The notes under the pieces were generated by a model. That model saw only the letters and a program-made list of their open reading frames with translations. It was not told the origin of the DNA and did not search any database. 64,000 bases of DNA. Origin: Callorhinchus milii (lineage: Eukaryota). This document shows, one piece after another, positions 16,634 through 52,800 of this stretch (positions are counted from its first letter, which is position 1; the number at the start of each line of letters is the position of its first letter). Location of the stretch: contig NW_024704755.1 in assembly GCF_018977255.1 (NCBI RefSeq), positions 15,810,001 to 15,874,000 on the forward strand, in the 5' to 3' direction. The translations under genes and the position numbers were made by a program.

Positions 16634-17398
16634 GAAATGCTTCCTGCTTTAGCAGTAGATTTAGGACACAATGGTCCTGGATAACATTCCAGTATATTGC
16701 TGGGGGGGGGGGAATGCTGCAATAATGCAGCATTAAGGTGACGTCATTCGGATGAGACTCTAGGAAGTTTACTCTGTCGATTCTGCAAGTTAATGATCTT
16801 ATTACTTCATTCCTGAAAAAAAGAAGCTTCTGCTTAGTTGTCAATCATCTTATGGCTGTTTGTAGAATTTTGCTGTGCACAAAATTGCTGTCACATGTGT
16901 TTACAAAATACAGTCACTATATTTAACATTAATTCGTGTAAATCCTTTGTGGCTTGTCGACTCCATAGCTGCTATAAAAAGGAAAGTGTTTTTTCTGCGT
17001 AAGCAATATCTCCCCCTCCTACGCCCCACATAAGGATGAGATGTTCTAAACCAAAGGGCCAAATTTGATAGGGAAAGAAAAGGAGACAGCAATGGAATGG
17101 TGTGTGACTCTCGCACAAACCAGAAACAGAAAAGGGTGAGGAAACGCAGGGGAGAAAGTAGAAAGGTGAAGGATATCGACACGGTTTAAAGTTGTTGAAA
17201 TAAATACAATTTTTAGTACTAATAAGCAAAGAAAAACATTAAAATGTGATTATTTCTATGAAGACCTATGCTACATAGTTGGGAGGAAAGGTACAACACG
17301 CCCATGTGATATTGGGCGGGTCAGGCAGCACCTATGGAGAAAGGAAAATGAGTCAAACTTTCGGGTCCACGACCCTTCATCAGAATTGGGGCCTGACG

Positions 17399-17437
17399 GA
17401 GTTCTGACGAAGGGTCGTGGACACGAAACGTTGACTC
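17399..17437 (+). ncRNA. Hammerhead ribozyme motif; an inverted second copy lies at 17351-17386 (-)
   Basis: GAGTT CTGACGA AGGGTC GTG GACAC GAAAC GTT GACTC; the minus copy reads CTGATGA AGGGTC GTG GACCC GAAAGTTTGACT. Confidence 0.6.
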
Positions 17438-20439: not shown

Positions 20440-21970
20440 CAACAACAACAACAAGATTCCATTTATAGAGCGCCTTTCACGTCGGAAGGACGTCCCAAGG
20501 CGCTGGTCAGTTGGGTCAGGACTCAAGCAGGGGGGATATGGTCAGGGTGAGGGGAGGGGAGCGAGGGAGCGAGGAATGGGTAGAGAGTCGAGAGGGGAGC
20601 TGAAGGCGCGGTCAAAGAGAAAGGTCTTGAGACCGGCCTTGAAGGAGGAAAGGGAGGAAGCAAGACAAAGGCACTGGGGGATGGAGTTCCAGAGCCCAGG
20701 GGCTGAGAGGCTGAAGGCCCGGCCAATGATGGTAGGGCAGTTGGGACGGGGGATGTGGAGTAGACCGGAGGCAGAGGAACGGAGAGTATGGGCAGGTAGG
20801 TAGGGGGATAGTAGGTCGGAGAGGTAGGAGGGAGCAAGGCCGTGAATGGCCTTGTAGGTGAGGATGAGGGTCTTGAATTCAATCCTCTGGGGGATGGGGA
20901 GCAGTGGAGGTGAGCGAGGGTGGGAGTGATGTGGTCACAAAGCCTGGTGCGGGACTCTACAGGAGCTGCAGAGTTCTGAATGACCTGCAGCTTGTGGAGG
21001 GATGTGCCGGAAAGGCCGGCGAGGAGACAGATCCCGTAGTCCAGCCTTGAGGTGATAAAGGCATGGACCAGAGTTTCAGCAGCATAAGGGGTGAGGTAGT
21101 GCCGTAGTCTGGCGATATTTTGGAGATGATGGAAGGCGGTGCAAGTTGTGGAGTGGATATGAGGAAGAAAGAACAGCTCAGGGTTGAACAGAACGCCGAG
21201 GTTCCTGATGGCTTTGAGAGGTGGAGAGTGCAGCCTTGGATGCTGATGCTGTCAGCGTTTGAGGTGCGGAGGCACCGATGTGAGCCAATCAGGAGGGCCT
21301 CAGTTTTGCGCACGTTGAGCTGAAGAAAGTTGTCTCTCGTCCAGGACTCGATGTCGGACAGGCAGGCTGTCAGGACATCGGTGGTCGTGGAGTTGAGGGT
21401 AGAGGAAGAATGCAGAGTTGGGTGTCATCCGCATACATGTGGAAGTTAACCCCATGTCTGCGGATGATATCACCAAGGGGGAGCATATAGAGGGTGAAGA
21501 GGAGGGGACTGAGGACAGAGCCCTGAGGGACACCGCACGAGACAGTGCGGGGGCTGGAGGAAAAGCCGATTGTGGAAACAAAATGGAGACGGTGGGAGAG
21601 GTACAACCTAAACCACTCAAGGACAGGGCCTTGAAGGTTGAGGTGGGAGGACAAGCGATGCAGGAGGATAGAGTGGTTGACCGTATCGAATGCTGCCAAT
21701 AGGTCGAGGAGGACGAGGAGGCAGAGGGAGCCCTGGTCGCAGATGGTCAAGATGTTATTTGTGACCTTGACCAGGATGGTTTCCGGGCAGCATGGAAACC
21801 CGACTGAAGGGGTTCGAATAATGCATGGGTGGAGAGGAAAGAGCGCAGCTGGGAGGCGACAACTCTTTCAAGGAACTTGGACAGGAAGCGGAGGTTGGAG
21901 ATGGGCCGGTAGCTTGATAGCTGCGATGCACCAAGGGAGGGCTTTTTCAAAGTGGGAGTGATGGCAGTGC
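20440..21970 (-). mobile_element. 5'-truncated L2-clade LINE, decayed RT
   Basis: Minus-strand ORFs [41 protein letters not shown]; tail GTGAAAGGCGCTCTATAAAT..(GTT)n at 20440-20500. Confidence 0.92.
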
Positions 21971-22300: not shown

Positions 22301-24014
22301 CATTACAATGTCATCTGATCTGCATCTTTCCCCTCATTTCTTTTGGATTATTAACACCTCTACTCCCCTGCTTTGTTGCAATAACAACCCCCTCCCCCTA
22401 CCACCAAACTGCTATGTTTTGTATCATTAACACCTCTTTAACCCGTCATCCCCTGTCCTCTACGCTATTTTCTCCTTTGCCTTCCTTGGCCTGCCTCTCC
22501 CCTCTCTGTTAGTCTTTAAAAGCCTCTCCCTCAAAACATACCCCAGTTCAGACCAAGGGACATGGACCCGAAACTTTGACTCACTTTCATTTCTCCATAG
22601 ATGCTGCCTGACATGCTGAGTATTCCCAGCGACTTCTGTTTTTGTTGGAGGTGTTAAGAGTCTGGTTCTGGAGAAGGGCTGCAGAGCACAGGAGGGTCTG
22701 CAGCTTGCGTAGTGAGATGCTGGGAGTCCCATGAGTAGGGAATTGAAATGATCAAGCCTGGACGTGATGAATGCACCAGGGAGAGCAATATTGATTGATT
22801 CAGGTGATGTTGTGAAGGTGCTGGAAACCTGAATAGTTGCATTTTTGGGCTTGGCTGATGTCTGACATCTGCTGGAATACAGCACCATGTTTGGAAGTAT
22901 CCAAACCAAAATGAGAGTTCCATGTATCTCACGTACACATCAACATTTTTGCGTATGGAAAGCGGAAGCGCAAGAGGAAGCATATAGATGAAGAAGAGGA
23001 GTGAGCTCATGTTATATGATAGTATAAAGAGAATTAGCAAAACACAGAAACATGGCACCCCACACATTTACCAAATTTAGAAAAAATCAGTTATGATATC
23101 TAATATTGAAGGGTTATTTGATGGTTATAATAAACTTGGGATTCGAAACAGAGCTGTAATGTTAAAGCGGTTCAAAGGCAAATATTGTCTACTGTAATTA
23201 GTGTGTATCCTGTGAAGTGCTTCGAGACGTCCTCCATGAGTGAAATGCACTATTTCAAATGTAAAGATTATACTATTTCATATTGAACAGTGCAGCACTA
23301 CATTACAGTAGGTGAACACGGTAGCCAATTTGACAGAAATGTCCACAAACAGATATTAAATAAATTATCATTTTTAATTAGCGATGTCTGGCCAGGACAC
23401 CAGGAAAAAATCTCTTCTGTTTTCCAGTAGCGATGTAGGGTATTTTACACCCAGCTGAAAAGACAAACTGGACCTCAAGTAAACATTTCACTCGAAGGAT
23501 AGCACCCCCATTAGAGAATGTTCTTAAAATACTCTTGTCAACATTGAACTCATAATCTTCTGACTCAATAGCTAGAATGCTAAGACAAGCTGACACCTAT
23601 TGCTCATCCTTGCAATTCACCTGCTGCCTTTATGAAATGAAAACGTTTTAAAACACATTGCTGTTAAGTTAATGACTGTGTTTGGAAGCAAGAGTGGCAC
23701 AGAAAATGCACAGTCGATTCAACAATATCATTCAAAACAATATTTAGCACACAGATTTTGACATTAATTGGAAAATACTCCCCAAATCCATAGATTAAAA
23801 GTGATCTTCTGTTCGGGTAACAGTGGAATGTAATGGACTCGGCCATATGTTGCTACAGCGCCTTGAGTATATATGAGCTGGGAGCTCTATTACCAAATTG
23901 AGACAATGTCAACATCATTTTATTTAGAACTATTTAACAGTATCTCTTCAAGCTATAAATGGTTAACTTTATTTATAGATGTATGTCTGAAAGGTGCGCT
24001 TCACAATTCATTTA

Positions 24015-24858: not shown

Positions 24859-25316
24859 ATGTTGGCGAGTGTTGTGTTTCAGTGTCTGTCTCTCCTGTGG
24901 ATAATTTCTAAAGGTTTGTGCATATTCAATATCCAAGTGTTCGGAAAAAGAAAGTGTTTATCTCTTATAGTATTTTGTTTCAAAACAATGTTTGAATTTA
25001 TTTCTGACAGTTGCTGACGTTACGTTGATCCAAGTAATGCAACGACCCAAACACATCGCTATCAACAGAGGTGAAGATGTGACATTCTCCTGCAACTTCT
25101 CTCGCAACCAGAGAGTGAAAATTTACTGGTGGAAGCAGGGAGCGAGCGAATACATGGGAAGCAGTCACAAGAAAACATCTCACCTCGAAGCTTCTGAAAG
25201 AGCCACCCTCAAGCTCCTGGATGCAGAACTTCAGGATTCTGGAACCTATTACTGTACAATGGTGTTTCAGGGAAATATAACAGTAAATGGATCTGGATCA
25301 CATTTAACTGTATATG
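24859..25316 (+). CDS. Gene 2: orphan leader + intact V exon; no own C1/TM found
   Basis: Leader 24859-24913 and V 25011-25316 (open frame, ..DSGTYYCTMVFQGNITVNGSGSHLTVY) with intact splice sites and upstream promoter block. No C1 or TM homolog seen before gene 3. Confidence 0.8.
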
Positions 25317-26543
25317 GTAAGTGTCATAATAAGTCAGAGATCGTAACTATTACATTGGCTCAAACCATAATTTATTTATGTAACGTCTCTCACTGTTGGG
25401 AGAGCATCTTAAAGCTCTTTACAAAGGCTGAGGGCTGCCGGAGCTGAAACCGAGGTGGGAGGGGAGAGTGGCGAAAAGGACAGTCAAAGAGGTGCATTTT
25501 CAGGTGGGATTCGATAGGAGAGAGGGACGGGCGAGAAGGATGGATTTCTATAAGGAATTCTAGAAGTTTGGGGCAATCTGGCTGAACGTTCCCTACACAT
25601 GAATATTCCCTAAAGTGGGGTGACATAAAACACTGGACACCATATTCAAAATAAGGTGTAACTATCGATTTATATATATCAACCATTAACCCTGTGATTT
25701 ATATTTATAAATCCTAGATTTCCACTTGATTTTTTTGAGAGCTTTTTTCACGTTGACTTCCCACAGTAAGATTTATCCACATTTAAACCCTAAGCCCTCT
25801 GATCTGCTTCTTTAATGATTATCCTCATGTTGTGGAGGGCAGCGGGGGGGGGGGGGGGGGGGGGGGGGGGTATCCAGTGTCTCATTTGATCTAAACCAAG
25901 CTGAAGTTTTCATTCATCCCCCCTACACATGGAAATTCCAGAGATGGAAGGGAATGCACACTCTCTCCCTGGAGGGATACAACCTGCTTAACTAATTCGA
26001 GAAATTATTAGGTGCAGGTTGGCAAGAGCCAAGTGTTCGCGCCCCAGATTATGCGTTGGGATACGGCTGGAGTGTAACCAGCTAAAACCGCATAGCTTAC
26101 CATTGATGTTGCTGTCTGGCAAGGTTTCCCATTGCTTTTCCAGCTCGGACGAGCCTATCCGTTAGGGCTTTGGCTTTTAGTGTTAACAGGAGCTGAGTGT
26201 GAATGTCTCTCTGCCCACAGTGGCTGGTCGGCCTTTCCAAGTTCTGTCCATGAGCCCGGCTGTCATCAGCAGTGCCCTGTGGACCCGCCCGGCTCAGGAA
26301 CCGGATTACTGAGACTCACATAGAGGACAGGATTGATTTCCATATTCTGTGCCAGGCTTGTGACCTTGTAGCCACTTCAGCCACATATAGTCCACTCCAC
26401 AAAACACACAGTCACCACCATTTACAGTATATCCTGTGAAGCGCTTTCAGACATTTCGACAACATGGTGAGGCGCGATATCAAATGCAAGAATTATTATT
26501 ATTATAATCTCACTTCAGCCTTAGGAACCTGGAAGCTACGGCG

Positions 26544-29500
26544 ATGAAGGTGAAGGACATTCCGCGGGGGGATGAGGAGGAGGAGCCACGGCCAGAGGTG
26601 AGTGTGTGGGCGAGGCTTGTGGAGTGTGGAGATGTCCCTGATCTCAGAGGCTCCTCTCACACGTGCGAGAGGTGTGGGAGGAGAAGGACAATCTCCACAC
26701 AATTCACAGCCACAACACACGGACCAACGTACAGGAGACATGACCCTCTCATTGCCTCTGTACACAGCCTGTGAGCCTGGGAATGTCCAAGACGAGTGAC
26801 CAGTTGAGTGACACTACAGGTTGGGTTAAAATCAGCAAAAATCAATGTTAAAAACATTTCCCAAAGTATTGCAACTGCCTGCTGTGTGAGGAGGGCCGTG
26901 TGCCTGACGGCCTGACTGGGGCCAGTCTGAATAACAATCCATTTCTTTCTCAGGACCAGACAAGTGCAAAGGAATTATTCATGGATTTTATGTTCTCTGA
27001 CACATGCAATGAGGTAATAATAATAATTATCATAATAACCGCATTTGATACATCGCCTTATCATTTTATTGACACATATCAAGCCACTTTACAGGACATA
27101 CTTTGAAGTGAAGAGACTACATTTTGGGGACTAAATGCGGCAGCCAGTTGCACTCTGAAGTTTCCCACAAAGAGCCGTGGAATCAATGAGAGAAAGGCAT
27201 TGGGAAACATGCATCAATCCCCAGTTGGGAATCGCACTCCAGCATCCAGCACATGGCAATTCCCGATCTGACTTGCACTGCCAGACATGGACAGCGCCAA
27301 TTCCAGTCAGTGAGAAGCTGGCAAGTGGAGTTGTCCCTGATCTGAGAGCTTCCTCTCACACACAAGAGAAAGGAAGGGAGAGGTCAGTCCCCACTTAATT
27401 CACACCCACAACATACAAATACCATACAGGATACATGTTGGACTACACCAACTGCCTGCTCGCTGGATCACGGCTGCTCGGCACCACAACAACACAACAA
27501 CAACAACAACAACAAAAGCGCATTTCCCTTTGGGAGGACGTCCCAAAGCCTTGGACAATTAAGGGTTTACACTGAAGCTGTGGTATGGAATCAAGAGCTG
27601 GCAGGGTGGGAGACATGAAGCAGGCCAGTGCCCACTGAGCGGTGTAACAGGGTTTGTATTAAGACATGGGTTCTGCACACACCAATGGCAGGTTTGTTTC
27701 TTAGGAAGAAGATCAAGTGGCATATCGTGACCTGGCGCTGGCATGGGCTCAACAGGATTTGGAGCGTCCAGCCAACCTGGTGAGTGTCAGACCCGGAGAC
27801 TCACCGAGTTACAGTGCAACCAGGTTTGGAGACTTGACATTCTCCAGCCAAGTCCTACAATGTCTTCAGACAGTCATGGCTGCCAGGGCCTTGCCAGCAG
27901 CTAATCCTCTGCTTTGTGTCTCTGCTACAGGTCAAGAACATCTCAGCCGAGAGGGAGGAGGAAAGGAGCAGGTAAGGGTTTTGCTACTCGCACAGCTGTC
28001 TGCAAATTCCCCTAAATCCCTTCAGCTCGAACCGTCTCTTCCAACCTTCAAATCGAGTTCAGAAATAATCACTTTGGCCGTTCCTTTTGGCGGCATCCTC
28101 AAACCCTGCCCTTCCCACAGCTGATCAGAGTTCCCAGTGTCTGTGTGCAGCTCTTTGAGACTTGAGTCTAATGTGAGCAGCATCATCTATAGGTTAAGTT
28201 GTTGTTGTTGTTGTTTGTTAGGCAGCAAAACGGCAAGAAGACAAGGGAGGAGAATAATGAGTTTGGAACAGAACAATTCCCACAGACCGTGAGTGAGCGC
28301 AGGCGGGCAAGTCTTTGTGTAATTAATGTGATGAGGGAGCGGGCATTTTACAGAGCAGCATAGGTGGTGGCAGCTGATTACGTCCCATTCACATCCAGTG
28401 CAGCTCTGTGTCCCCACCCATACAATCTCTGGATAATATTTATTATAACAATAATGCTTCCATTTGATTCCTTATAATGTCATTCATACATCTCAAAGCG
28501 CTTCACCGGAGATTCTGTAAAGCATTTCCCAAAGTAATCTCACCGTCTTCCATGGTTGGGACCTCCTCCTGATGGGAAAGGCACTATACAAATGTAAATT
28601 GTTGTTGTCGTTGTTGTTGTCTGCTGGGTGAGTAGGGCCATGTGCCTGACTGCCTAACCCGGAGCCAATCTCAATGACAACCCATTTTTTTCTCAGGAAG
28701 AAGAAATAATGACACAACGGTGCATGGAATTTCTTCTTTCAAACTCCTCCAATCAGGTAACAATAATTATAATAATTCTTGCATTTGATACAGCAGCTTC
28801 TTATGTCATCCTGACATCTCAAAGCATTTGACAGGACATACTGGAAAGTGTAGTGATTGTGTGTTTTGCGGACAAAACGCGGAAGCCAGTTTCACACAGA
28901 AGTTTGCCACAAAAAGCTATGGAGCCATTCCGGCATCCAGCACACGGCAATTCCCAATCCAACTGCATCTTTGGACATGGCAAGAAACCATCCCAGTTAG
29001 TGGGAGGCTGGTATGTCCATGACAGGTGGCTTTGAGCTCCCGACTGAGATACCAGGATAATGGACAAGAAGTCTGGTGATGTCCCTGATCTACGAAGCTA
29101 CTCTCACACACAGGGGTCGGAGGGGCGAGGACAAACTCCAGTTAATTCCCAGCCAACACATACAGAAATCAAATAGGAAACTTGAGCCTCCCACACCCCT
29201 GCAATGTGAGGACGTCCCAAGGATCTGGATAGTTAAGGGTAGTTAGAATCAAGAAACTAAGTCAGCGCACACTAACAGCAGCTTTGTATTTCAGGAAAAA
29301 GGACTGCTTTCCCCCCTTGACCTGGAGCTGGCGATGGCACAAGAGGCTCAGGAGCGGCATGCCAAAGTGGTGAGTGTCAGACCCATAGAGTCACCGAGCG
29401 GTCGGGATTGGAGACTTGATATTCTCCAGCACAATCTGGCAATGTCTTCAGCCAGGGCTTTGCCAGCAGATAATCCTCTTCTTTCTGTCAACTTTCCAGG

Positions 29501-31420
29501 TCAAGAACATCACGGCAGAGAGGGATGAGGCGAGGAGCAGGTAAGCTTTTTGCTACGCACCCGCACTTCATGAACTGCCCCCAATTCCCTTCACCTCGCA
29601 TTGTCTGTTTCTGCCTTCAAACTCCTCTCAGAAATGAATCACTTTGGCCATTCCTATCCTCAAACCCTGCCCTTCCCCTGGCTGCTCAGAGCTCCTGATG
29701 TCTGTGTGAAGCTTTTGAAATGTGAGTGGCATTGTGCAAATTGTTGTTGTTGTTGTTTGTTAGGCTGAAGAAAAACGAACACATGGAGGAACCCAAGAAT
29801 AAAACTGTTGTAAAAGTGGACGTTCCACAGTCAGTGAGTGAGCCCAGGGAGGCAAGTCGCTGTGTAACTAATGGGCCAAGGGAGCAGATGCTTTACAGTG
29901 TAGACGGTGGCGGCTGGTAACATACAGTGCAGCAGAGCTTTCCCACCCGCATCCCTATCACCTGTCGCCTCGCTATCAGGAGTCTCATAATACTTATTAC
30001 CATAGTAATCCTTGCATTTGATACAGTGCCTTATCGTGTCATTGAGGCATCTCAAAGCTCTTCACAGGATATGCTGTAAAGTGTAGTGACTGTTTCTTTG
30101 TGGGAGAAGCGCGGCAGCCAATTTACGCACAGCATTGTCCGACAAACTGTGTGGAATGAGTGACCAATTTTACCTGTGGCATTGTTGGCCAGGGCACTGG
30201 GAGAGAGAAGCTCCCTTCTCTTTTCAAATTGTACCACGAGATCTTTAACATCACCTGAACAGGCAGATGGGACTTCATATTAGCATCTCATCCGAAGATT
30301 GGTGCCTCCAGCAAAGCAGCACTCCCCCAGCAATGCATTGGAGTGTCACCTTAGACTAAGTGATTCTAAGTCCCGATGTGGGATTTGAACCCAAAACCTT
30401 CTGTCTTAGAGTAGGGCGCTACCACTGAACCAGGATGACACAAGATCTGAGCGAGTGCCTGAATCTTTCACTTTGTCTTTAGGACAAAGAAGAACAGAAA
30501 GAGGAAGAAGTTCAGGGCAGCCAGAGAGAGCAGGTAATGCAAGAAATGCTGCGATCGCAAGAGAAGTGGAGAAGGTGGAGGAGCTCCAGTCTATATTCAA
30601 GCTGCTGATTTTCAGTGACTGTCTAATCTCTAGCAAATTCTGTCCCCACAGACATCGGTCGAAGTGGGAGTGAAGGAACTCTCCAGGGGTAAGCAAAAGT
30701 CTCTGTCCGTTTCCTGGAGAGTGTGAGTTCCTCTCAGTCACCCATTTGGGGCAGGTCATGTCTCTGCCAATCAGCTCAGGGGCTAGAAACTGGAAATGGG
30801 AACAGGAATTCTGTCTTCACATTCCAGCAGATCCCCTCAGCCTGTTACCCTTTACAGGGAATATGAACGAGCACCATGTCTGGAGGGGAGGGGAAAGGAT
30901 CTTGCACTCGTTGGGCTGCCTGGATCACAAGCCTGGTCTCGCTCCTTGTTTAATTCCACCCGAGTCTCGTTGCTTCAAAGACTTTGCTCCTAATCCTCCA
31001 ATCCCTCTCGTGGCTGAGTGAGACCTTAGAGTTTGCAGAGAGGTCGGTCTGGAGGGATACTCGCGTGTGGGAGGGTCATTGTCAAAGTGTCTTTTTATGT
31101 TCCCACCAGGAGCAGCAGCAGCAGAAGCCGAGAAGAAGAAGAAAAAGAGGAAAAGGTACAGTGATGCGCTCTCAGTGATGCTCTCTCAGTGAGACTCTCT
31201 GGGTTGCCAGGAAGGCTGGTTGAGCACAGGACGTTGCATTCACTGAAGAAACGGCTGGATTCTGTGATGCGGAGACTGTCGGTGGGAGTCGAATACTGTT
31301 GTGATCCTGTTAATATTCAGCTGTTTCCAGTTGTTTCCGGGAATCACTGTTGTTTTCTTTCGTACACACAGGACCTGCTGCTGGTGTTGTTTTCCCTGGA
31401 GGAAAAGAACTAATGACTGA
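26544..31420 (+). CDS. Unrecognised 13-micro-exon gene; charged, partly coiled-coil-like protein of about 241 aa with polybasic plus Cys-cluster C-terminus
   Basis: Exons 26544-26597, 26954-27013, 27705-27779, 27931-27971, 28222-28288, 28697-28756, 29295-29369, 29500-29540, 29764-29833, 30483-30533, 30652-30688, 31110-31155, 31372-31420. All have pyrimidine-rich AG acceptors and GTRAG/GTAA-type donors (one GTACAG). Junction phases 0,0,0,2,0,0,0,2,0,0,1,2 join into 726 nt without an internal stop. AATAAA at 31835. Confidence 0.75.
29990..30440 (-). mobile_element. Long Deu-domain-type SINE inside an intron of the micro-exon gene
   Basis: Reverse complement has a head GTCATCCTGGTTCAGTGGTAGCGCCC..GGGTTCAAATCCC, a Deu-like core and the shared tail. 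Further remnants at about 18890-19290, 23290-23620, 42150-42530, 45640-46030 and 61860-62160. Confidence 0.65.
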
Positions 31421-31494
31421 GAGCAACGAACACTCCTCCCCTCTCCTCTCGTCTGGCTGGATCATGGCTCCTCTGCTCCTCTCCTTGGAAGATC

Positions 31495-31790
31495 ATGTTA
31501 TTATTATTTTTAATTGTTATTATCTTTATTATTGTTATTAGTATTATTCTTGTTATTATTGTTATTATTATTATTATTATTCCTATTGTTGGATTTTGGT
31601 GGGGTTAGTTTCTCATGTTTACAATTATTCTTGCTATTAATATTATGATTGCTATTATTATGGTGATTACATTATTGTTGTAATATTTTTGTTTTTGTTA
31701 TATTATATTGTGATATTATATCTCGCAGTGTATCTTCAAAGGACCATATTAGTATTATTATTACTGTTATTACTATTATTATTAATGCTT
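31495..31790. repeat. (TTA/TTG)n-rich low-complexity tract in the putative 3' UTR of the micro-exon gene
   Basis: Direct reading; lies between the stop at 31420 and AATAAA at 31835. Confidence 0.85.
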
Positions 31791-31834
31791 GCAGTTGTAA
31801 AATGTGAAATATATCATATTTTTGTTCGTTTGTC

Positions 31835-31840
31835 AATAAA
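31835..31840 (+). terminator. Candidate polyadenylation signal of the micro-exon gene
   Basis: AATAAA followed by a T/GT-rich element (tttgttttctggg) at about 31862. Confidence 0.55.
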
Positions 31841-32775
31841 AGTTTACTTTATGGAGCCAAACTTTGTTTTCTGGGCTCTTTACTGTGGTGTCGGATTGTG
31901 TGGTCATTAGGTATGAATGGAGTAAGGAGGGGCTCGGGTTCCATTCTCGCCTCATTAAACAACGCTGGTAAACAAGCGAGTGAAACACATCTGTAAGGCA
32001 TTCGCACTTTCAAACATTGTCCAGTTGTCCTGCAAACATCAGGCCTCGATGTTATGATTGCGTGTATGAAAGTTTTAGGCAGCCTAAGGTGTTAGACAGA
32101 GGTGGAGAAGAACAGAGCGGGTCATTGTTATTCACATTTGTTTGTCTGAACAAACAGCTGGGACTCTAATGTCAAGTTGATGCTATGGCAATTTCAGTAT
32201 CATTTTATTTACAACTATTTAATTTCATCTCTTCGACCTTCAAATGGTTTGTGTTATTCACATTTGTCTGTCTGGAAGATGCTCTTTACAATTAATTTGA
32301 AGACCAACTTGTGCTCATACTGTTATGCAATGAAACAACTTGCGCCCATCACCAGGAATGGATGAAAGCTCGGCCACCGATGTTGGAAAGGAGGGGACGA
32401 GAAACCAGCAGGAGGCCAAAGCCATTCGAGGGGAGGCGGCGGGGAGCGGTGTGGAGAGTAAACAGGTCGGAGAGATTGTGGGGGACAGTCAGGGAATGCG
32501 TGGTTATGTAAACCAGTATGAGGATCTTGAAGTCAATCGATTCTGTGATAAGGAGCCAGTGTAGTCTGGCAAGGACTCCTGGGATGGCAATACAAAGTTT
32601 AAATCTCTGCATTAATTTTTGGTTGAATGATACTATTGAGATTCAAAACCTTATAAGTCACTGTGTACAGTAGCTGTCACCGCAACATAGGGGCTGCCCT
32701 AGAGACAGTCCAGAGAAGGAAGGAGAGAGAAGCAACAAGAATCATCCCAAGGGTTAGAGGAACGATCTATCAACA

Positions 32776-32800
32776 NNNNNNNNNNNNNNNNNNNNNNNNN
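32776..32800. other. 25-N assembly gap
   Basis: The flanks (gatctatcaaca / ggaatggaca) are directly adjacent in the paralogs at about 46865 and 52755. Confidence 0.95.
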
Positions 32801-33049
32801 GGAATGGACAAGCTGTGCTCTCCAGATTTGTGAGAAGGCGACTCATTCGGGTCTCTCGGGGTCTCACTAATATAACACCGTTCACATAAGGCGATAGTCT
32901 GAAAGCATTTTATAAAACCAGAATTGGAGCCCAACTGCGCCACAGGGACAGGAAGTCAACATCACTCTCACACATCTCATCTCAACTGACTGCAACCCCT
33001 TGTAACAGATCAGTGACCGCTTTAGGGTTTGTCTCAGTCAGAGATCAGG

Positions 33050-36000
33050 ATGTTGGCGAGTGTTGTGTTTCAGTGTCTGTCTCTCATGTGGATCATTCCT
33101 AAAGGTTTGTCCTTATTCAATATCACAGTTTGCTGAAAAAGGACAAGGATAAAGTTCTTATTCTAGTTGTATCCATTTATGCAGTGTATCGTATCTCTAA
33201 CTTACTCTGTGTTTATCTCTTTGTCGCAGTACTTTTCTTTCAAAACAATATTTGAATTTATTTCTGACAGTTGCTGACGGGACATCGATCCAAGTAACTC
33301 AACATCCCGAACACGTCGCTGTAAACATTGGTGAAAGTATGAAGTTCTCCTGTAACTTCCCCGACACTAAGATTGTAATAACAGGGAGAGAGTGAATACC
33401 TGAGAAATGATCCTAAGAAAGAATTTGGTCAGGAAAGTACAGGAAGAGCCTTCCTCAAACTCTTGGATGTGCACCACCAGGATTCTGGAATCTATTACTG
33501 TGCAGCGGTGACTCCGGGAAAAACAACAGTAAATGGGACTGGATCACATTTAACGGTATATGATGAGTGTCATTATAAGGCAGAGAGCTTAACTATTTAC
33601 TCACGCCACCGGGATTCTGGAGCCTATCACTGTGCAATGCAGACTGACTCACGAAAATGTTTACTCGATCAGTCATTTACATTTATGAAAAGTCTCTCAT
33701 TGTTGGGGGAGAATCTTAAAGCGCTTTACAAAGGCTGAGGGGCTGCCGGAGCTGAGACCGAGCTGGGAGGGGAGATGGCCACAAGGACAGTCAAACTGGT
33801 GTGTCTTCAGGTGGGATTTGCGAGGAGAGAGGGAAGGGCGAGAAGGATGGATTTCGGGAAGGAGTTTATAATGATTTATCATCTAAAATATATTGGTTCT
33901 TATTATTCACCACAGTCTGTCGAGTGTAAGCTCAAATTCGTATGCATTACATTTCGTGTGCCATTTCTATGCCTAATCCACTCATCTGTCTCCCTCTCGC
34001 TGAAGGCGCTTACAATCTTTTTGCAATAACCAAATGCAAGTTCTACATTGTTATTTATTTTGTGAGTCTTGTAAACTTCGAAACTATCCCCCATATACCA
34101 TACTCAAGATTAAATAATGTTGCGAAATATTATAGGTTAGTGGGAGTTGACTTAGAAAATTACACTAATAGCTGTTGAGTTTCATAATTCACTTGATAGC
34201 TGTCGTGAGATATTATTGTGCACAAAATTGTCTGTCGCGTAGGAAAACAAATACACGCAATACACTTCATAGTTAAACCTGCGAAGCGATTTGAGACGTG
34301 ATAAGGCGTTATATCAAAGATTTTTATTGCAGTGCCCCCAATTCCTCTGAATAATTCGTGCAAAGATCCTCAAAGACATCCTTCTGTGTTTCGACTCTCG
34401 TGTGTAAAACAGCAGCGTTTTACCCGAGAATCTCACCTTCACATGGTTTAAAAACGGCACAGAAATTACAACTGGGATACATACCACTAAACGACAGAAC
34501 ACTGAGGGACTGTTTGAAGCTTCCAGCTCTGTGGAGGAGACACAGTCTGTCCAGAATGGGACAGTTTATACCTGTTGTGTGTCTCACATCAGCCTCCAGA
34601 CTCCAGGAATTCGCAACTACACCATTTGCACGGTTTACCTTCCTGACAAAGGTAGGAATACAGCAGTCTCAGTGTCAATTAGCGTTAAGGGTCTTCGCAA
34701 GAGAATTTTCTTCTTTTAATTCACACCATGAACGACAGCCATATAATTTCCTTCATGTAAAATATAAACCACTTTCACCTTTTAATGCATAACATTTGAA
34801 TTGCTATGAATGCAAAGTATCACTTGCCCTTGAAAATATTCACAATTCAGATTTCAAACCTTTCATTTACAATATATTGTATTCAAGAATGCGATATGAA
34901 ATATGAATTTCCACCCCATTTCATAACTAGGAGTTGCTTTATGTCCCCTCTGTTTCACTTCAAGACCTGTCTTCAATATCGCCATTATATTAAATAACTT
35001 CAGTAAAATAGATGTCTCTCTCTCCAGCTGTCTCCCTGCAAAATAACTGAGATACCTGCCCCCGTTCTCCTTACTAATAATAAATATATTCACCCACAAA
35101 ATATAGAATCAAAAATATAATTTCCTACAAAGCACTTTGAGACACCAGCATTATGTAATGAGGCATTATAACAATGCAATACTTATTATTTATTATTATT
35201 CCCTGGAGGTTTCATTGTCTACAGCTTTTTCTCCACAAAATAATTAACTTGCTTTCTCATTTCCCCTATTGTTCAATAAAAATGATCGAATACATTTTTT
35301 TAAAACGTAATCCGATGGCGAAGCAGGAGACAAGTCACATGAGACATCCCGGTTTCCATTTTTTAAATGGAAAAACATAACATCGTAATTTGCCCTTAAA
35401 CACTTTTTTTTCAAGAGGATTGTGTAATTGCTGAAACTCTAAACCATAAGCTCATAATGTGCAGCTCCATCTCTCATCTCCCGGTTTCCAGACCAAACAG
35501 TCTCCCAAATCAAAAAATCCAGATGCTGCAAATCTGAAAACAAAAACAGAAGTCGTTGGGAACACTCAGCAGATCAGGCAGTATATATGGAGAAAGAAAG
35601 TGAGTCCTGTTCTGACGATGGGTTGTGGACCTGAAAAGTTGACTAACTTTCCTTTCTCTATAGACGCTGCCTGACTGCTGAGTGTTCCCACAGACTTCTG
35701 TTTTTATCCCCAAACTGGTGGCTTACCCTATGACTGTGGGGCATTACTGTGCAAAAATTGGATGCCGGGATTGCACAAAAGTACACGATCACAATATTTT
35801 ACAGTCATTGTATAAAGCGATTTGAGATGTCTTGACAATATAATATATGGATCATTGTATCATTATTATGATCTTTCCTACAGAGGAAAATAAACTTCGA
35901 AAGTGGTTACAGATCGTTGGACCTGCAGTGGGGTTGGCTTTGTTGGTGCTGTTAGTGTACTTTAGAAAGCGATCCAAATTAAAGAAAACGAAAGGTAAGA

Positions 36001-38902
36001 ATTAAATAATTTTGTTCCGGTTAATAATGAATGCTTGATTTTAGTACACGTAAGTGTGCAAGTGTGATATTCCTCCAGTAACCCAGAGACTGCTTGTTAT
36101 AGAAAAATCGACCTAGACACTCTAAGGGTCCAATAATTTCTCACACTTTTCATTCTCCATTGGCGATTCAACAAAAATTTCATTTATGATATTTCATTCA
36201 TTTTAGGATTACACAGGAAACAGAATGATTCGAACAATCTTAACCAGCAGGTAATAACCATCCCACATGGTGTTTCATACCTAAAGGTGATTGATAACAT
36301 TGAAAAGGATTGTGTTGTTTATAATTATATGAGGATGTTTTCAAAATATTACTTACCTGATTGCCCGCTTCACTATGTCATTCAAATTGTGTTCACACCA
36401 ATATAAGGCACCAATGCAACATAGGTGACATAATGTTCAGGCCAACCAGGCTTGAGAAAACATTCCTGTACATTGAGTTAAACATTGAGAGTCGCAGTTT
36501 GTGATTCACAGGCAATGTATGGAGGAGAAGCTGAGACAGTGACTTATGTCACACTGGATATGAAAAGTTCCAATAAATTTTCAAGACCGAGACATCAGGA
36601 AGACAGGACAGTTTACGCCAAGGTACAGCTGAAAAGCATGACATCGACACTTGCAATCGTATTATTCTAACCGTAATGGATTGAAGCCCACGTGCCTCAT
36701 TTTGGCCATCTCACTTCAGGGTAGATGTCAATTCCTGCAGAAAAGATTTCCAAAGCATGGTTTGTTTTCATTGGAGCTAGACGGTCAAGAGGGGATCTGA
36801 TGGAAGTTTACCAAATTAGTAATTATTTTGACAGTGTATATAGAAATAAACTATTTCCTTTGTTAAGGGGATCATCAAATAGAGGACATGTATACGATTG
36901 TCACAAGGAGCGAAAGGAAACTTTAGCAGATTGTTTTCACACAAGGTGGTGTTTTGGTAAGGCGGTAGAAGCAGATTCTATCATGAGTTTCAAGAGGTAA
37001 GTACATAGGGATATGGAATATATACTTAAATGGGCCTCTAGTTCGATTATACAGGAACACTGCAACTTATCCCATTTATCATTTTTTTTATTCGTGAGCC
37101 TAGATAGTGAGTGCAGCAAACTAGGCTACTCGACAGACATCACAGCTGACTGGAAACTGTTTCATGCACCTCTTTCGAACAGACAATTGGCGCATCGCAC
37201 AGCACCTCAGATTTCCCCCTTCCCCTCCCCAGAAAAGGGGCATTCAGGTCATTGGCCACCCTCCCTGGACAACTCTGGGAGGGAGCTGAGCACCACTGGT
37301 TTCTTACAGATTGGTTTGGAACAGCACAGTTGTCTTTACAGTTGAGCTATAGGAAATACCATGTAGGAGATTCCAGTGAGTATTTCTTTTACTGTGTTTG
37401 AATTTTCATATAAAGACTGAATGAATTAAATTCCAATACCTTGACTTTTATAGATCAAGCAAAAGGTGGAAAATAACAAGCAGATATATGCTTCTTTGGA
37501 GTTTTCTGGCCTGGAGAAAGCAGGAAAACCTAAGAGAAGTGAACGCAATACAGTGTATGCCGCGGTGCAGGTGAGGAATCGTGAAGGACATTGGAAGCGA
37601 TTTCTGGGGAACCAAAATCAATGATGCATTGAATGGTTAGCTGTGGGAGCTGATTCTTAGAGCAAAGTGATGGGAGGTTCCCTACCATATAAAGTAATGT
37701 ACAAAATAGTCCACAGATGATTTCCAACCCCACACACTCCTGCACCCACCCCCACACGCATATCAATGGACGCTGAGCTCAATTACAGCTGCCTCCCTAT
37801 CAATCATGGATGGAGCCAGGTACATCATAATGCTTATGGCATGGAACAGTTGGCTTTATCAACTGCATTATGGGACTAACCAAGGTGGAGATTTATATTG
37901 GTGAATGTTTCTATGATATTTCTGAACTTTTTACATACAGAGGGAATTAACTAATTTACCAATCCTTCTCTTTCACAGACCAAGCAAGCTGCAGTCAGTA
38001 ACAACCTCACATATGCTACTCTTGATTTTTCTGACTCCAAGACAACACAAAAACCTAACCGCAGTGATGTGAATGCAGTGTATGCCGAGATACAGGTGAG
38101 AAAGTATAGCAAAGTAATCTACAGGAAACTAAGATCTAATGTCACAATTTAATAAACCAATTCTTAGTATATTGGTTATATTCTCTGTCATGGACACCCA
38201 GTCCACTCACGCTACTATTGTGCTGCTAGTCCATCATCATTATTCCCAGAGGAAACTACAGTTCAAGAATCATACAACCATTCGAGAGAAGATAAATAGA
38301 CCATTCTTACCAAACAAAGCTATGTGAATGTATTTTCACACCAATTAACCCAATCTAAAATTTCCATTCATTCTCCAATCCATACAGCTTTTCCCTCTTT
38401 AAGAATCTGTCCTTCCTTTTTCTTGGTTTACATAGATTTTGACCTTCTTGTCCTTCCTTTGCATAAAGAATTTTTCTCACACCGATCCTTCAATTTTCAA
38501 TTTTTGTGATTATCTTAAATTTATGCCCTCTACTAACTCACAGCTGTGTCTTTCTCCACACAACCAAGTAAATGCAATTCTCCTGCTTGCTCCACAACCT
38601 TGACCTTTACCTAGAACTATATGTAGAAAATTATCAGTAGTTTTTCAAAGTTGGACAAATGGATAAGCTAACAACGTTACCAAAAATTGGCTTTACAGGC
38701 CAAGCAAGGGGCATCCGCTAACAAGCTGACATACGCAGCTTTAGAATTTTCTGCATCCAAGAAAGCAGAAAAACCTAAACACAATCACAAGAATACAGAG
38801 TATACCAAGATACCGGTGAGAAAACAGAAAGGAGCAATAGAGGCCATCTCAACAGAACAGGATTCACATAATGTTACAATGATAAGTGCAAAAACTGATT
38901 AG
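33050..38902 (+). pseudogene. Gene 3: inhibitory-type receptor with disrupted V and C1 exons but intact TM and five cytoplasmic exons
   Basis: Leader 33050-33104. V 33271-33562 has a 14-nt deletion removing WWK and a donor GT>AT at 33563. C1 34333-34651 has two 1-nt deletions (319 vs 321 nt). Intact: TM 35884-35994, cyt1 36207-36250, cyt2 36512-36622, cyt3 37454-37570, cyt4 37979-38095, cyt5 38699-38902. Confidence 0.85.
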
Positions 38903-40094
38903 AGTACAATACAATGTTAATCATTCCATACAACGTGGACTAATGACCCACGTTGCAAATCAATTGCATCCGTCAAACATAACTGTAGTTATTTGTGGTC
39001 TTTTAAATATTTTAGGAAGTTTCTTGTAGAAATGTAGTCCTGGACAAATTTATTTTTGGATTTAAGTACTAATGTGTGATGTTTTATATTTATCTGATAA
39101 TGTCATTAGACCTAACGAGTAAATTCTTTAATTCAAACTATAATCCATTTAAATAAGTTTAGCATCATTCATAAACTATAATCAATTTAAATAAGTTTGG
39201 TGTTGTATCATGTTTTATCACCTTTTTCAAAGTAATGCTGTATCATTTTTGTGAATTTTTCAATAAGGAACAATTCCCAAGCACAACATGTGTGATTTCT
39301 GCATTAATCACATTGTGTTTTTTTCAATATTCACCAAGTGGGGTGTGTGCTCGCTTGAAATCTGTTTAATAAAATATCAAAATAGCTAAAAATTGCTCAA
39401 TTCATTCTTCAGCAGTAAAATGATTGAGGTGTGGGTGTTCTACCCGTGAAGTATCTGCTAAAATGTACGTGACATGAAGTAATTAGGCTTTACTGTTATT
39501 TTTGTGGTTTATGATACTGACACTAAATGATTCCATTACAAGTGTCTCACACTCTTGGGCTGAATGTAGAGTGTGGTTTTATGAACTTTTCTCCACCATG
39601 AGCGGTTTCTGCATTATTCAGCATGTAGGCGGCTGCAGCTATCAGGCCTGAATTCTACCTATTGTCAATCCTTAAGACTAATATATTCTTACAATGTAAG
39701 ATTAATGTGCATTACAATGTGTAGACAATGTGACACATAATCAGTTTTAATTTGAAAGTCGTTTCTTGTTGAGGATTACTGGAAACAATCTTCCAAGACT
39801 GCATTGAAAAACCTTGAACGTTAATGTAAATCTAAATGGAATTTCAAGCCTAATGTTTCATGATTAATGCAATCAATAACAGGTGCTGACAATTCAATAA
39901 TGAACTCATTCTGTACATCTTCTGCACATGTTCTCTTTTATTATCTGTGCCCTATATTGGACTCAACAGTGGGTTCACTTTGAACTCCAATCACTTCTGT
40001 TAAGTTGTCCGACACTATTCTTTCACACATAGATTCGGTGGGCCTGTTTTCTTATTTCCTATTAATAATGCAACTCATGATACAATTATTCATT

Positions 40095-43329: not shown

Positions 43330-44600
43330 GACTAGGGTGCATTCCCGGACATAATCTTCAGGTCCATTGACAACTCTATTGTGGCTGTTTCCTGCTCTCA
43401 CAGTAGGCTGGAAAAATTCACCAATTTTGCTTCCACCCTCCAACCCTCCATAACCTTCACATGGTTAATTTCTGACTCTTCCCTTCTCTTCCTCACCTTC
43501 ACCGTTTCCATCTGGGGCATGTGATCAACAGATATCTTTTACAAGACCACCAACTCACACGGTTATCTGAATTACACCTCCTCCCACCCCACCTCATGTA
43601 AAGACTCCATTCCCTTTTCCAAGTTCCTCCACCTCCACCGCATCTGCTCTGACGATGCCACCTTTCACACCAAAGGTGCTGAAATGTCTTCTTTTTTCCT
43701 CAACCGAGGATTCCCAACCACTGTAGTAAGCAAGTTCCTTGTCTGTGTCCACCCTATTTCCCGCACATCTGCCCTCAACCCTTCCCCATATTCCCAGAAC
43801 CATGATAGGGTCCACCTTGTCCTCACCTTCCACCCCACCATCCTCAACATCCAACAAATAATTCTTTGCCGTTTCCGGCACCTCCAGCGTGATCCAAAAC
43901 TAAATATATCTTTCACTCCCCTCCACTCTCAGCATTCCCATGGGACCTTTCGCTTTGTGACTCCCTGGTTTATTCCTCCATCACCACCAACAGTTGCTCT
44001 CCTCACCCCGGCACTTTGCCATGCCAGCAAAGGAGATGCAATACCTGACCTGTCACCTCCTCCCATTCCACTGCCCAGGACCCCAAACATAGTTTTCAGT
44101 TAGACAGCAATTTATGTGCACTACCATCAATGTAGTATATGGCATTCGCACAAACATGAAGAATAGCACCTCATCTATCTGCTCGGGAACTTACAGCCCT
44201 CTGGCTTCAATATTGGTTTCAACAATTTCAGACCATAAAATCTTAACTTCCTCTCCCCCTCGTCTGTGTACATTACCACATCATCTCTGACCCAGATACA
44301 CATTTTCTCTCTCTGGCCTCCGATTTTGTTCCAAATTCCCACCCACCCCCATCACTTTTGCATCGTTAACACCTCTTTAACCCATCATACACTGTCCTCT
44401 ACCCTATTTTCTCCTTTGTCTTCCATGCCTTGCCTCCCCACTTCCCCTCTCTGTCAGCCCTTAAAAGCCTCTCTCTCACAAGATACCCCAGTTCTGACGA
44501 AGGGTCGTGGACCCGAAACGTTGACTCACTTTCCTTTCTACATAGATGCTGCCTGACCGGCTGGGTGTTCCCAGCGACTTCTGTTTTTGTTTGAGGTGTT
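43330..44600 (+). mobile_element. Decayed Penelope-like element (RT C-terminus, GIY-YIG remnant, 3' repeat with hammerhead motif)
   Basis: ORF 43684..44103 FFLNRGFP..LVLTFHPT..RHLQRD; remnants resembling the GIY-YIG region (VVYGIR; HLIYLLGNLQPSGFNIGFNNF); terminal repeat at 44489-44600. Confidence 0.8.
44489..44527 (+). ncRNA. Minimal type-I hammerhead ribozyme motif (Penelope-associated)
   Basis: AGTT-CTGACGA-A-GGGTC GTG GACCC-GAAAC-GTT-GACT: core CUGANGA/GAAA, 5-bp stem II, palindromic ACGU stem III, stem I AGUU/GACU. Activity is not shown. Confidence 0.7.
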
Positions 44601-49826: not shown

Positions 49827-52800
49827 AGGTAAGACATTAATTGATTTGAGACCGCGCCATTGCTTTAATTTTAAAATATTACAAAATGTAGAATAACTGA
49901 CGGATCAAAAGTGAGAAAGTGAGTTGGTAAATAAACTGATGCAATGCTTTAGAGTGTGAAAATGAAGACATTGTATGCAGAAGCAATCATTGCTATGTGA
50001 TACACTTCCCGAAAATATCCAGAAGTCCTTTCTTTATAAGGTAATTAGTTTACAAAAACATGAGTATTTTCTTGTGAACAAATATTCGAGCCACCCCAAA
50101 ATATGTAAATATCATTTCATTGTTTGACTGATATAACCTTCAGCAAATTAAGATAGAAACGCCAATCCTAATGTGAACTCATGGTTTTTCTTCAATGTTC
50201 TGATCATGTATTGATTAAGGTTATCATTGTTTTCCTTCCAGATATCTGTGTTGCCCATGAGACTGATGTGCCAATCATCTAAAACATGTTTTCATAACGT
50301 TTTGCAATACATCTTTTCCTTTCAGATATTCGACGTACTAATATACTGTATCTGAAAAGCAAATGAAGCGCTAAAAAATGTATACGGAAACTCGAAATGT
50401 AACCGAATCCACGGCGATGGACAGTCCAGGGTTTGCACCCGCGCTGGTGGTGGAAGCGGAAGGGATTGGGGGCAAAAGATGACCGAAGTTGCATTGATAT
50501 CGCACTTCGATATGAAAAGTAGCAATTCGTGGAATCAAAATGGGAATAATTATTTAACAATATTGACAATTATTCCCTTGTTATAGGAACAAAAGACGAG
50601 TCATCATTGACTGCAGGAAAAGTGAAGAACCGAAAGAGAATCTACAGTGTATGTCCAAATGCAGCGCAGAAACTTAAATAATCTGTAATATACGGATAGA
50701 TAAATATTATCCTGGAGAACGCGTGTGCACATAAATTACTAAACAGTGCACGATAACTACTGCTGAAGTTGGATGTATTATATTTGCAGATTAATAAATA
50801 GAGAACTGTAATTGTAAAAAAAAACAAGAGATTCCCTTATACAGATAACCTTTATACTTTAATACTAGAAGGAATAGTTTAAGATTGTATCACCCAATCT
50901 TGCCCGGTCAGTGTGTCTGCACAGGACTTGGCTCAGAGCAGAATTAGAGTTGGATGAACCTCAGTGAATATGGTCCGACCCGAGATTGCGACAGGCTCCA
51001 ATAACACAGGAAATTGTAAATGCAGCCAGAAATACCGAGTGTGCTGAGGTCTATACGAGAAACCGCAGACGAGCTTCAGAGGCGATTTGCAGTCAAACAA
51101 CTGTCACGTAAATTCAAAACAGAGCCGATAAAGGCTGCGATTCGCTGCTTTGGATTCTTTTCATTCAGCAAAACAAACGCAGCGACAGGAATGCACCGTG
51201 TGCCGAAGGTGGGAAACAACAGGGAAGCAGGAGACGGCATCCACACAGCACTGAGGTTGTGCTGCAGCGACAGGCGCTGATTAATGGAGTACACCGATGT
51301 TAATTGTAATACCCAATTGTATAAAGTAATGTTCCTATCAGTTCCGTCTTGTAAGTTTATTAGAATGTTGCAGATAATTAGTCTTAATTGTTTTCGGATG
51401 TTTCTTGTAGATTTTACAACAGAATATTTCCCGATTGTAGCAATTACTATACCTAATTACCCCAAAAGCCATGTTGATCTAACAATGTGGCAAAATTGTA
51501 CCAGAGAATTGTTCAATTAAAAATATTCCGTACATCATAACACAAGACGATAATCAGTTTCTTTTTTTAAAAAAAAGCGTCGTGTTATCAAAATTTAATG
51601 GCGAACAATTATGGAAGAGAAATCTCCTTTACCTACGCTGACTCTTCCTAGTGATAACGTGATATACTTTATGGGAATCCTCGTTAACAAACAACGCGCA
51701 ATTCATCCACGGTACTGAAAAGATCCAGGTTGTGTTTTGGGGTCAGCCGGATGTCTGCGGAAATTTATCACCATGTTTAAGATTGTCCAATCCAAGCTGA
51801 GAATCATATGTGAACGATCTACAATACAGACATGTTGTTAAATAAAATACATAATCTTGCATTTTGTGTCAATCTGAACCTTCTTTCCTAAGGAGTTAAA
51901 CACAAACACTGTCGCTCGTTTCAGACAGATGCACCGTAAAATGTTTATTGTTTCACATCTGTATCGATTAGGAATGGTAATTGTCGTTATCCCCACTATC
52001 CCACTGTGGCTATGATTCACACTCTAGAGGCAGACTGGCATAACTCCTACTCGTGATCTCAAAAATAATGAGTTCATTTGATGGAGGAGCGGAGAGGGAG
52101 TCAATATAATGGTGAGGAGATTTTACATTACAGCGCCTTGAGTGTACATGAGCTGGAGCTCTAAAGTCAAGCTGACGCTATGGCAAATATAGCATCGTTT
52201 TATTTACAACTATTTAATGGCATCTTTTCTTGCGATAAATAGTTTGGTTTGTTCAAATTTGTCTCGCTGAAAGATACTCTTTACGATTAATAATAATAAT
52301 AATAATGATTCGTTTGAAGACTAAAAGGAAACATGTGCTCACACTGTTATGCAATAAAACAACGCGCCCATCACCAGGAATGGATTAAAGCTCGGCCACC
52401 GATGTTGGAAAGGAGGGGACGAGAACCCAACAGGAGCCCAGAGAGGAAACAGCTCGGAGCGCAGTGAGGGTCAGTCAGGGAATGAGTGGTTATGTAAACC
52501 AGTGAGAGGATCTTGAAGTCGATCCATTCTGTGATAAGGAGCCAGTGTCGCCTGGCAAGGCTTGGGGGGGGGGGGGGGGGGTGGTGATTCACAGTTTAAA
52601 TCTGTGCATTAATTATTGTTTTGAATGATAATATTGAGACTTCAGCACCTGTTAAGTCAATGTTGCTGTCATCGCAACATAGGGGCTGTCCTGAAGACAA
52701 TCCAGAAGAGGCGGGAGAGAGAAGCAACAAGAATCATCCCAATGGTTAGTGGAACGATCTATCAACAGGAATGGACAAGCTGTGCTCTCCAGACTTGTGA

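Follow-up and report, generated by a model that had tools for sequence, protein, structure and literature searches.

A 64-kb stretch of genomic DNA from Callorhinchus milii, the elephant shark (contig NW_024704755.1 of assembly GCF_018977255.1, positions 15,810,001 to 15,874,000 of the forward strand) was analysed as a whole and is called the window here. All coordinates count from its first letter, and features lie on the + strand unless stated otherwise. The window holds five tandem + strand copies of one gene type, V(J-like)-C1-TM-tail, whose exons run from a leader and a V-set exon with a J-like GxGSHLTV end through one C1-set exon and a transmembrane (TM) exon to a first cytoplasmic exon (cyt1) and a set of tyrosine modules. 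The subject of this report is the cytoplasmic tail of the third copy, gene 3, in which four exons (cyt2 to cyt5) each encode two tyrosine motifs. Apart from this gene family the window contains repeats, and no flanking marker genes were seen in its 64 kb.

The SIRP-like gene cluster

On sequence, the window genes are a SIRP-like V-C1 receptor family of cartilaginous fish. Pfam domains recognised in gene 5 include the C1-set (PF07654, 1.2e-13) and the V-set (3.8e-10). The 3' end of the V exon reads GTGSHLTV in genes 3 to 5, GAGSHLTV in gene 1, and GSGSHLTV in gene 2. These are forms of the germline J-like motif G-x-G-x-x-L-x-V that, together with an N-terminal V-set domain, marks the SIRP family. 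The two C1 domains of SIRP were not found, as genes 1, 3, and 5 have one C1 exon only between V and TM. Among PDB sequences, the nearest to the ectodomain are shark UrIg2 (9dmx, 1.3e-19), immunoglobulin (Ig) constant regions, and SIRP-alpha/gamma; the C1 domain matches the SIRP-alpha structure 2wng at 3.5e-12. Relatives in Callorhinchus, Heterodontus, Heptranchias, and Mustelus carry the automatic NCBI name 'tyrosine-protein phosphatase non-receptor type substrate 1-like' (SIRP-alpha-like), and further relatives are auto-named SIRP-beta-like or tapasin-related-like.

The cytoplasmic tail of gene 3

The TM exon of gene 3 (35884-35994; …WLQIVGPAVGLALLVLLVYFRKRSKLKKTK) is bounded by phase-1 junctions on both sides, and none of its TM residues is charged. 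It is followed by the 44-nt cyt1 exon (36207-36250; LHRKQNDSNNLNQQ), which runs from phase 1 to phase 0 and sets the frame of the tail to phase 0. The four module exons are cyt2 (36512-36622, 111 nt; VTYVTL ... TVYAK/I; junctions cacag/GCA...AAG/gtacag, with the slash at the exon border), cyt3 (37454-37570, 117 nt; QIYASL ... TVYAAV; atag/ATC...CAG/gtgagg), cyt4 (37979-38095, 117 nt; LTYATL ... AVYAEI; acag/ACC...CAG/gtgaga), and the terminal cyt5 (38699-38902, 204 nt including TAG; LTYAAL ... TEYTKI; acag/GCC). All four reading frames are open, splice sites are of the consensus type, and every junction is phase 0. In the spliced tail, ...VYFRKRSKLKKTKGLHRKQNDSNNLNQQ is followed by four modules of 37-39 residues and a 28-residue C-terminal peptide. 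The first poly(A) signal past the stop codon, AATAAA at 39368-39373, lies at an offset of 466 from position 38902. An earlier note on this DNA had described four phase-0 exons between 36512 and 38902, and its lengths and boundaries agree with ours to the base; the eight tyrosine peptides it quoted are all present in the translation.

The two ends of the array deviate from the inner modules. The donor of cyt2 sits 6 nt upstream of the donor position in cyt3 and cyt4. Reading through it yields 'VQ', because the former ...GTA CAG is now intronic, and the +3 residue of TVYAK/I is therefore taken from the first codon of the following exon: Ile if cyt3 comes next, and Thr if cyt4 does, as in gene 5. 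At the other end, cyt5 retains the ancestral gtgaga at the end of the module and reads through it into ...VRKQKGAIEAIS... and TAG. The resulting C-terminal peptide (…KGAIEAIS…) is conserved, and similar extensions occur in several family members, including those of the horn shark.

Homology of the modules

Each module follows the pattern L/V-x-Y-A-x-L, 23 residues, T-x-Y-x-x-I/V. The nine modules of the window align without gaps over 39 columns, in which both tyrosines and the leucine at +3 of the first tyrosine are invariant. Searches with tblastn inside the window linked cyt3 to cyt4 (2e-7), cyt5 to cyt3 (6e-10), and cyt5 to cyt4 (1e-9), and cyt2 to the other modules at 1e-4 to 8e-3. Nucleotide identity between modules is 44-73%, against 26-27% in shuffles (z = 4.3-11.6). 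The likeness of cyt3 and cyt4 extends about 78 nt into the upstream intron, with 70% identity over 205 nt including intron.

A chance or low-complexity resemblance among unrelated short exons or open reading frames (ORFs) would be in keeping with the shortness of these exons and their many K, A, S, and T residues. Such an origin can practically be dismissed, given the gapless 39-column alignment, significant E-values, z-scores up to 11.6, the continuation of the likeness into introns, and the orthologous modules of other genes (1 and 5) and other species. The mutual homology of cyt2 to cyt5, which the earlier note had claimed, is thus borne out by aligning the exons.

Motif classes

By strict consensus, an immunoreceptor tyrosine-based inhibitory motif (ITIM) reads I/V/L/S-x-Y-x-x-I/V/L and an immunoreceptor tyrosine-based switch motif (ITSM) reads T-x-Y-x-x-V/I. 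Three ITIMs (VTYVTL, LTYATL, and LTYAAL) and three ITSMs (TVYAKI, TVYAAV, and TEYTKI) are present in gene 3. The tail combines ITIM and ITSM consensus motifs with the uncharged TM segment of a type I receptor. An immunoreceptor tyrosine-based activation motif (YxxL/I-x(6-8)-YxxL/I, with 10-12 residues between tyrosines) was also considered and is excluded by the distances, which are 23 within a module and 14-16 between modules.

The ectodomain of gene 3

Upstream of its tail, gene 3 is damaged. The leader exon (33050-33104) is intact, with a phase-1 donor, when aligned with the leaders of genes 1, 2, 4, and 5. A five-copy DNA alignment revealed that the V-set exon (33271-33562) is disabled by a 14-nt deletion and by a donor change from GT to AT. 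The deletion removes the invariant W-W-K codons and shifts the frame, which leads to a stop after ...KIVITGRE. Two 1-nt deletions at different sites, seen against genes 1, 4, and 5 in a four-copy DNA alignment, have cost the C1-set exon (34333-34651) its frame and left it with two out-of-frame ORFs. An uninterrupted ORF with intact splice sites in all exons is thus not found in gene 3, and a working eight-motif receptor, as the earlier note could be read to suggest, is not supported in this assembly, given the 14-nt deletion and donor change of the V exon and the two 1-nt deletions of the C1 exon. Neither the 14-nt deletion nor the donor substitution is a typical sequencing or assembly error. 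Because its own V and C1 exons are disabled while all four modules are kept, gene 3 is most probably a copy that was inactivated not long ago and preserves the maximal tail in the genome, rather than an expressed eight-motif receptor.

The C1-TM intron of gene 3 also holds an inverted pair of a short interspersed element of about 100-190 bp (35512-35705). The same element is found at 17320-17528, 22543-22646, 44488-44592, and 62548-62648, with at least five recurrences in the window.

The other copies of the cluster

Gene 5 (53017-58354) is the sole fully intact paralogue in the window. Its exon table and translation give a leader, V, C1, TM, cyt1, cyt2, cyt4, and cyt5, which form an ORF of 421 aa with six tyrosine motifs; it was used as the family reference. 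Three of the six are canonical, in line with the count made earlier. The absence of cyt3 is due to a clean 557-bp genomic deletion (37160-37716 in gene 3 coordinates).

Gene 1 is intact as far as cyt3. Its tail (9992-15109) has an intact cyt2 (from 9992) and cyt3 (from 11033), followed by a defective cyt4 (from 14222) and cyt5 (from 14948). A 1-nt deletion in cyt4 leads to a stop, so that the protein ends past its fifth motif, and cyt5 contains stop codons. The five motifs previously attributed to gene 1 are indeed what precedes the frameshift in cyt4. Its translation equals NCBI XP_007902894.1 (P0002) over V, C1, TM, cyt1, and cyt2, and differs by one residue in cyt3. Within the gene 1 cyt3-cyt4 intron lies a LINE-type retroelement (11499-14005, + strand) with an endonuclease-reverse transcriptase domain (PF14529, 2e-11) and RVT_1 (2e-19). 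Another reverse transcriptase fragment occurs at 21373-21867 of the minus strand (RVT_1, 1.8e-18). The TM-cyt1 intron of gene 1 contains a CA/TA-rich, microsatellite-like tract (8630-9390) with runs of N at 8939-9072 and 9157-9316.

Gene 2 consists of an intact leader and V exon (24859-25316), a good donor, and about 280 bp of intron, at which point homology to the other copies stops. It is an orphan without C1, TM, or tail exons of its own. On its 3' side come about 6.5 kb of repeats, a 25-N gap (32776-32800), and then the normal upstream region of gene 3. Gene 4 has intact leader, V, and C1 exons with 90-96% DNA identity to gene 3. No TM exon or tail is recognisable between 49300 and 52700, where weak remnants without tyrosines occur near 51028-51207. 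These remnants (+ strand; …NTECAEV…RRASEAICSQ and …RSDRNAPCAE, with Cys in the places of Tyr) are probably a decayed tail. The 5' halves of genes 3 and 4, spanning the upstream region, leader, V, and C1 (32801-35009 and 46877-49124), are by far the closest pair in the cluster, at 90-96% identity. This closeness, with gene 4 keeping the exons intact but no tail and gene 3 the tail but broken V and C1 exons, suggests that a partial duplication or gene conversion took place recently.

The next gene beyond the window (model P0001, XP_007904055.1) has cyt2, cyt3, and cyt5, and lacks cyt4. When compared with window positions 57426-58267, this old NCBI model proves to be chimaeric, with cyt4 and cyt5 of gene 5 followed by the V exon of the next gene. 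It uses a cryptic gtgaga donor inside cyt5.

Distribution and history of the modules

With a profile built on the nine modules of the window, a search of 1.84 billion protein representatives at E <= 0.001 retrieved 21 proteins. The source was looked up for 17 of these: one is a teleost protein, and the rest come from cartilaginous fish. The remaining four share the V-C1-TM-tail build. The teleost match (P0028, KAI3353488.1, Scortum barcoo) is a multi-Ig, CD22-like protein with three repeated pairs, NLHYASVEFSN...ENVEYAAVKV (profile E = 1.6e-6). Either convergence or a shared unit of older date could account for the likeness.

Two modules, the first of cyt2-type and the second of a terminal 'TKQ...' type, are the usual number in the family, and some members have one or three. 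The maximum of four is reached in gene 3 and, independently, in the horn-shark isoform P0015. Horn-shark paralogues contain one, two, three, or four modules, with one phase-0 exon per module at two loci. In the annotation of Heterodontus francisci (L001, CM071052.1; P0029/P0030 and P0005/P0013), one gene has isoforms that differ in whether they include the C1 exon, and a further horn-shark isoform ends just past the TM. Since these isoforms differ in exons, exon skipping may be real in the SIRP-like family.

The tree built from module DNA places horn-shark cyt2 with the cyt2 exons of the elephant shark (support 97/96). The cyt3, cyt4, and cyt5 exons each pair across genes (100/99, 85/85, and 86/91), the first pair being gene 3 cyt3 with gene 1 cyt3, and the three together exclude the terminal module of the horn shark (84/85). 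These groupings place the triplication of the terminal module in the chimaera lineage, ahead of the duplication of genes 1, 3, and 5. The tail most common in the family has two modules, one of cyt2-type and one of terminal type, and in the elephant-shark lineage the terminal module with its upstream intron was triplicated to cyt3, cyt4, and cyt5. As every module exon is phase 0-0, later deletions alter the module count in frame. That modular phase-0 exons allow the number of motifs to change without a frameshift had been proposed earlier, and the gene 5 deletion, P0001, and the one to four modules of the horn shark support it. The cluster evolves by birth and death.

Proposed signalling mechanism

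Each module may be read as one docking unit for a tandem-SH2 phosphatase, because the TM is uncharged, the spacing of an activation motif is excluded, and the motifs match known binding preferences. For the N-SH2 domain of SHP-2 the preferred sequence is (I/L/V)xpY(T/V/A)x(I/V/L) that has L at +3 and, at +5, an aromatic residue, and the C-SH2 domain allows T at -2, with a preference for A at +1 and for I at +3; these binding sites are conserved across jawed vertebrates (PMC12151841). Motif statistics were collected over 54 modules of the family. The two tyrosines are 22-23 residues apart in 52 of them. Motif 1 has L/V at -2 (42/54), A at +1 (44/54), L at +3 (46/54), and L/F at +5 (44/54), and motif 2 has T at -2 (39/54) and A at +1 (38/54). 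The motif pair and its spacing fit the SHP-2 N-SH2 and C-SH2 preferences, and the modules are putative SHP-docking sites.

In the proposed mechanism, the first motif of a module (L/V-x-Y-A-x-L-D/E-F/L) is of N-SH2 type, and the second (T-x-Y-A/T-x-I/V), which lies 23 residues downstream, is of C-SH2 type. Once Src-family kinases have phosphorylated a module, one SHP-1 or SHP-2 molecule would dock on it through its tandem SH2 domains, and the number of modules would set the capacity or avidity of phosphatase recruitment. Taken jointly, the results are read as duplicated SHP-docking modules of about 39 codons in a SIRP-like family, with gene 3 as a recently inactivated copy that records the maximal tail. 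We consider this reading probable, with appreciable room left for doubt.

Weighing the alternatives

Several results weigh against the favoured reading. Position -2 makes two of the eight gene 3 motifs, QIYASL and AVYAEI, non-canonical. An assembly error could account for one of the C1 deletions, which lies within a C-run. The TM and cyt1-5 exons of gene 3 (704 nt of coding sequence in six exons) contain no stop, indel, or splice defect, and a split of four ectodomain lesions to none in the TM and tail has a chance of about 0.06 by a hand calculation; given this clean tail beside four ectodomain lesions, the tail could still be in use. Tests of constraint on the gene 3 tail had no power. Pairwise dN/dS (the ratio of non-synonymous to synonymous substitution rates) is 0.55-0.73, and lineage-specific synonymous to non-synonymous changes number 6:13 in gene 3 and 5:16 in the intact gene 5 (Fisher p = 0.16-0.30); these values depart neither from neutrality nor from those of gene 5. 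Mammalian SIRP-alpha stayed below the threshold (E <= 0.001) in the profile search. An hhalign comparison of the shark module with a provisional sequence for the second half of the human SIRP-alpha tail gave 38% identity and 85% probability; as the sole ground for linking the shark module to that tail, this serves as a lead rather than a test.

The first alternative, that the four-module tail of gene 3 is expressed, builds on some of these points. Either the upstream lesions would be assembly errors, or the leader and V of gene 2 would be spliced to the TM exon of gene 3 across about 10.5 kb (25316 to 35884), skipping the V and C1 exons of gene 3 and giving a V-only receptor with eight motifs. 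Gene 2 has a leader and V exon only, with a good donor, its junctions to the gene 3 TM are all phase 1, and the TM and tail of gene 3 are fully open with good splice sites. The dead V donor of gene 3 would favour skipping of that exon. V-only members or isoforms also exist in the family, such as P0017 and the horn-shark P0029, which lacks C1 and otherwise equals P0030 (with C1), and a short isoform of mouse SIRP-alpha without the C1 exons is a parallel to such a C1-less product (PMC12324903). Against this, the transcript would have to pass the promoter and leader of gene 3 and skip a C1 exon with intact splice sites, and no annotated protein with a four-module tail is found among the relatives of gene 5, in a database whose coverage of the locus is poor. 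The atypical character of the 14-nt deletion and GT to AT change as assembly errors counts against the other route. Expression of the tail is accordingly judged unlikely, and the more specific proposal, in which the gene 3 tail is still used via the gene 2 V and up to four SHP molecules dock to make a graded, 'high-gain' inhibitory receptor, is clearly improbable.

The tyrosine pairs could, alternatively, be YxxPhi endocytic sorting signals or sites for SHIP, Csk, or SAP/EAT-2, and not mainly for SHP-1/SHP-2, in which case the module number would tune trafficking or switch function instead of inhibition. All eight motifs fit YxxPhi, and three fit the ITSM consensus, which binds SAP-family adaptors in SLAM receptors. 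However, the conserved L/V at -2, A at +1, L at +3, and F/L at +5 of motif 1 and the T at -2 of motif 2 go beyond what YxxPhi requires, and these features and the fixed spacing of 22-23 residues match the bidentate preferences of SHP-2 (PMC12151841). The same paper argues that Glu at pY-1, as in TEYTKI, speaks against a SAP-type switch (PMC12151841). We regard this reading as rather unlikely, and the SHP-docking modules with an inactivated gene 3 remain the preferred account.

Significance

A SIRP-like V-C1 family of cartilaginous fish with a tail array of duplicated, exon-sized bi-tyrosine units is apparently new with respect to the literature searched, as is the difference in unit number between neighbouring paralogues. 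No description of SIRP-like genes in sharks or chimaeras was found in that literature, and the papers on UrIg and shark MHC mention neither SIRP nor ITIM. Already known are ITIM-bearing receptors of the Ig superfamily, ITIM-ITSM pairs that engage SHP-2, and cytoplasmic tails encoded by several exons.

The findings suggest that the two-pair tail of SIRP-alpha is built from a repeatable, exon-sized unit already present in cartilaginous fish, whose number evolution has varied between one and four. A natural series of two, three, and four modules is available in the cluster and could serve to test how the number of ITIM-ITSM units sets inhibitory strength. Moreover, the oldest jawed vertebrates have a SIRP-like V-C1 multigene family not described before, which bears on the origin of C1-domain receptors and of inhibitory signalling. 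The eight-motif copy, gene 3, is probably dead, and it illustrates the growth and shrinkage of such tails and not a proven eight-motif receptor.

Comparison with known receptor systems

The closest parallel is SIRP-alpha (SHPS-1/BIT/PTPNS1), which shares with the window family a V domain with a J-like motif followed by C1-set sequence, an uncharged TM, and ITIM-type tyrosine pairs in the tail (xTYAxL ... xEYAxI/V Q). The four-tyrosine tail of human SIRP-alpha appears to consist of two such modules, so that eight motifs would be a doubling of a known plan. In mouse SIRP-alpha, the cytoplasmic part is split over exons 6-8 (PMC12324903). SIRP-alpha has two C1 domains and two modules, whereas the window family has one C1 and up to four modules, each in its own phase-0 exon, and forms a large tandem set with birth and death. 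The likeness is one of sequence, and by the same measure the window C1 domain is at least as near to shark UrIg2 and Ig constant domains as to SIRP.

UrIg is a non-rearranging elasmobranch gene with a germline-joined VJ-C1 build (PMC12227049), and this ectodomain plan is common to UrIg and the window family. The solved UrIg2 chain is V-C1-C2-C3 and its paper mentions no ITIM, whereas the tyrosine modules are a separate feature of the window family.

The PD-1 pair, (I/V)(D/E)YG(E/V)L(D/E)F ... (T/V)EYATI, engages the N-SH2 and C-SH2 domains of SHP-2 (PMC12151841). An ITIM-ITSM unit is found in PD-1 and also in BTLA; in PD-1 the two motifs are about 25 residues apart, and the shark counterpart is LTYA(T/A)L(D/E)F followed by TEYTKI or TVYAAV at 23. 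PD-1 has a single unit under an unrelated V-only ectodomain, whereas in the shark family the unit is repeated two to four times by exon duplication.

Short cytoplasmic exons with ITIMs or ITSMs, whose skipping or loss alters signalling capacity, are also found in PECAM-1, CD22/Siglecs, FCRL, CEACAM1, and the teleost LITRs. The exons of those tails are generally dissimilar, whereas those of the shark family are recognisable recent duplicates of one bi-tyrosine unit, and their copy number differs between neighbouring paralogues.

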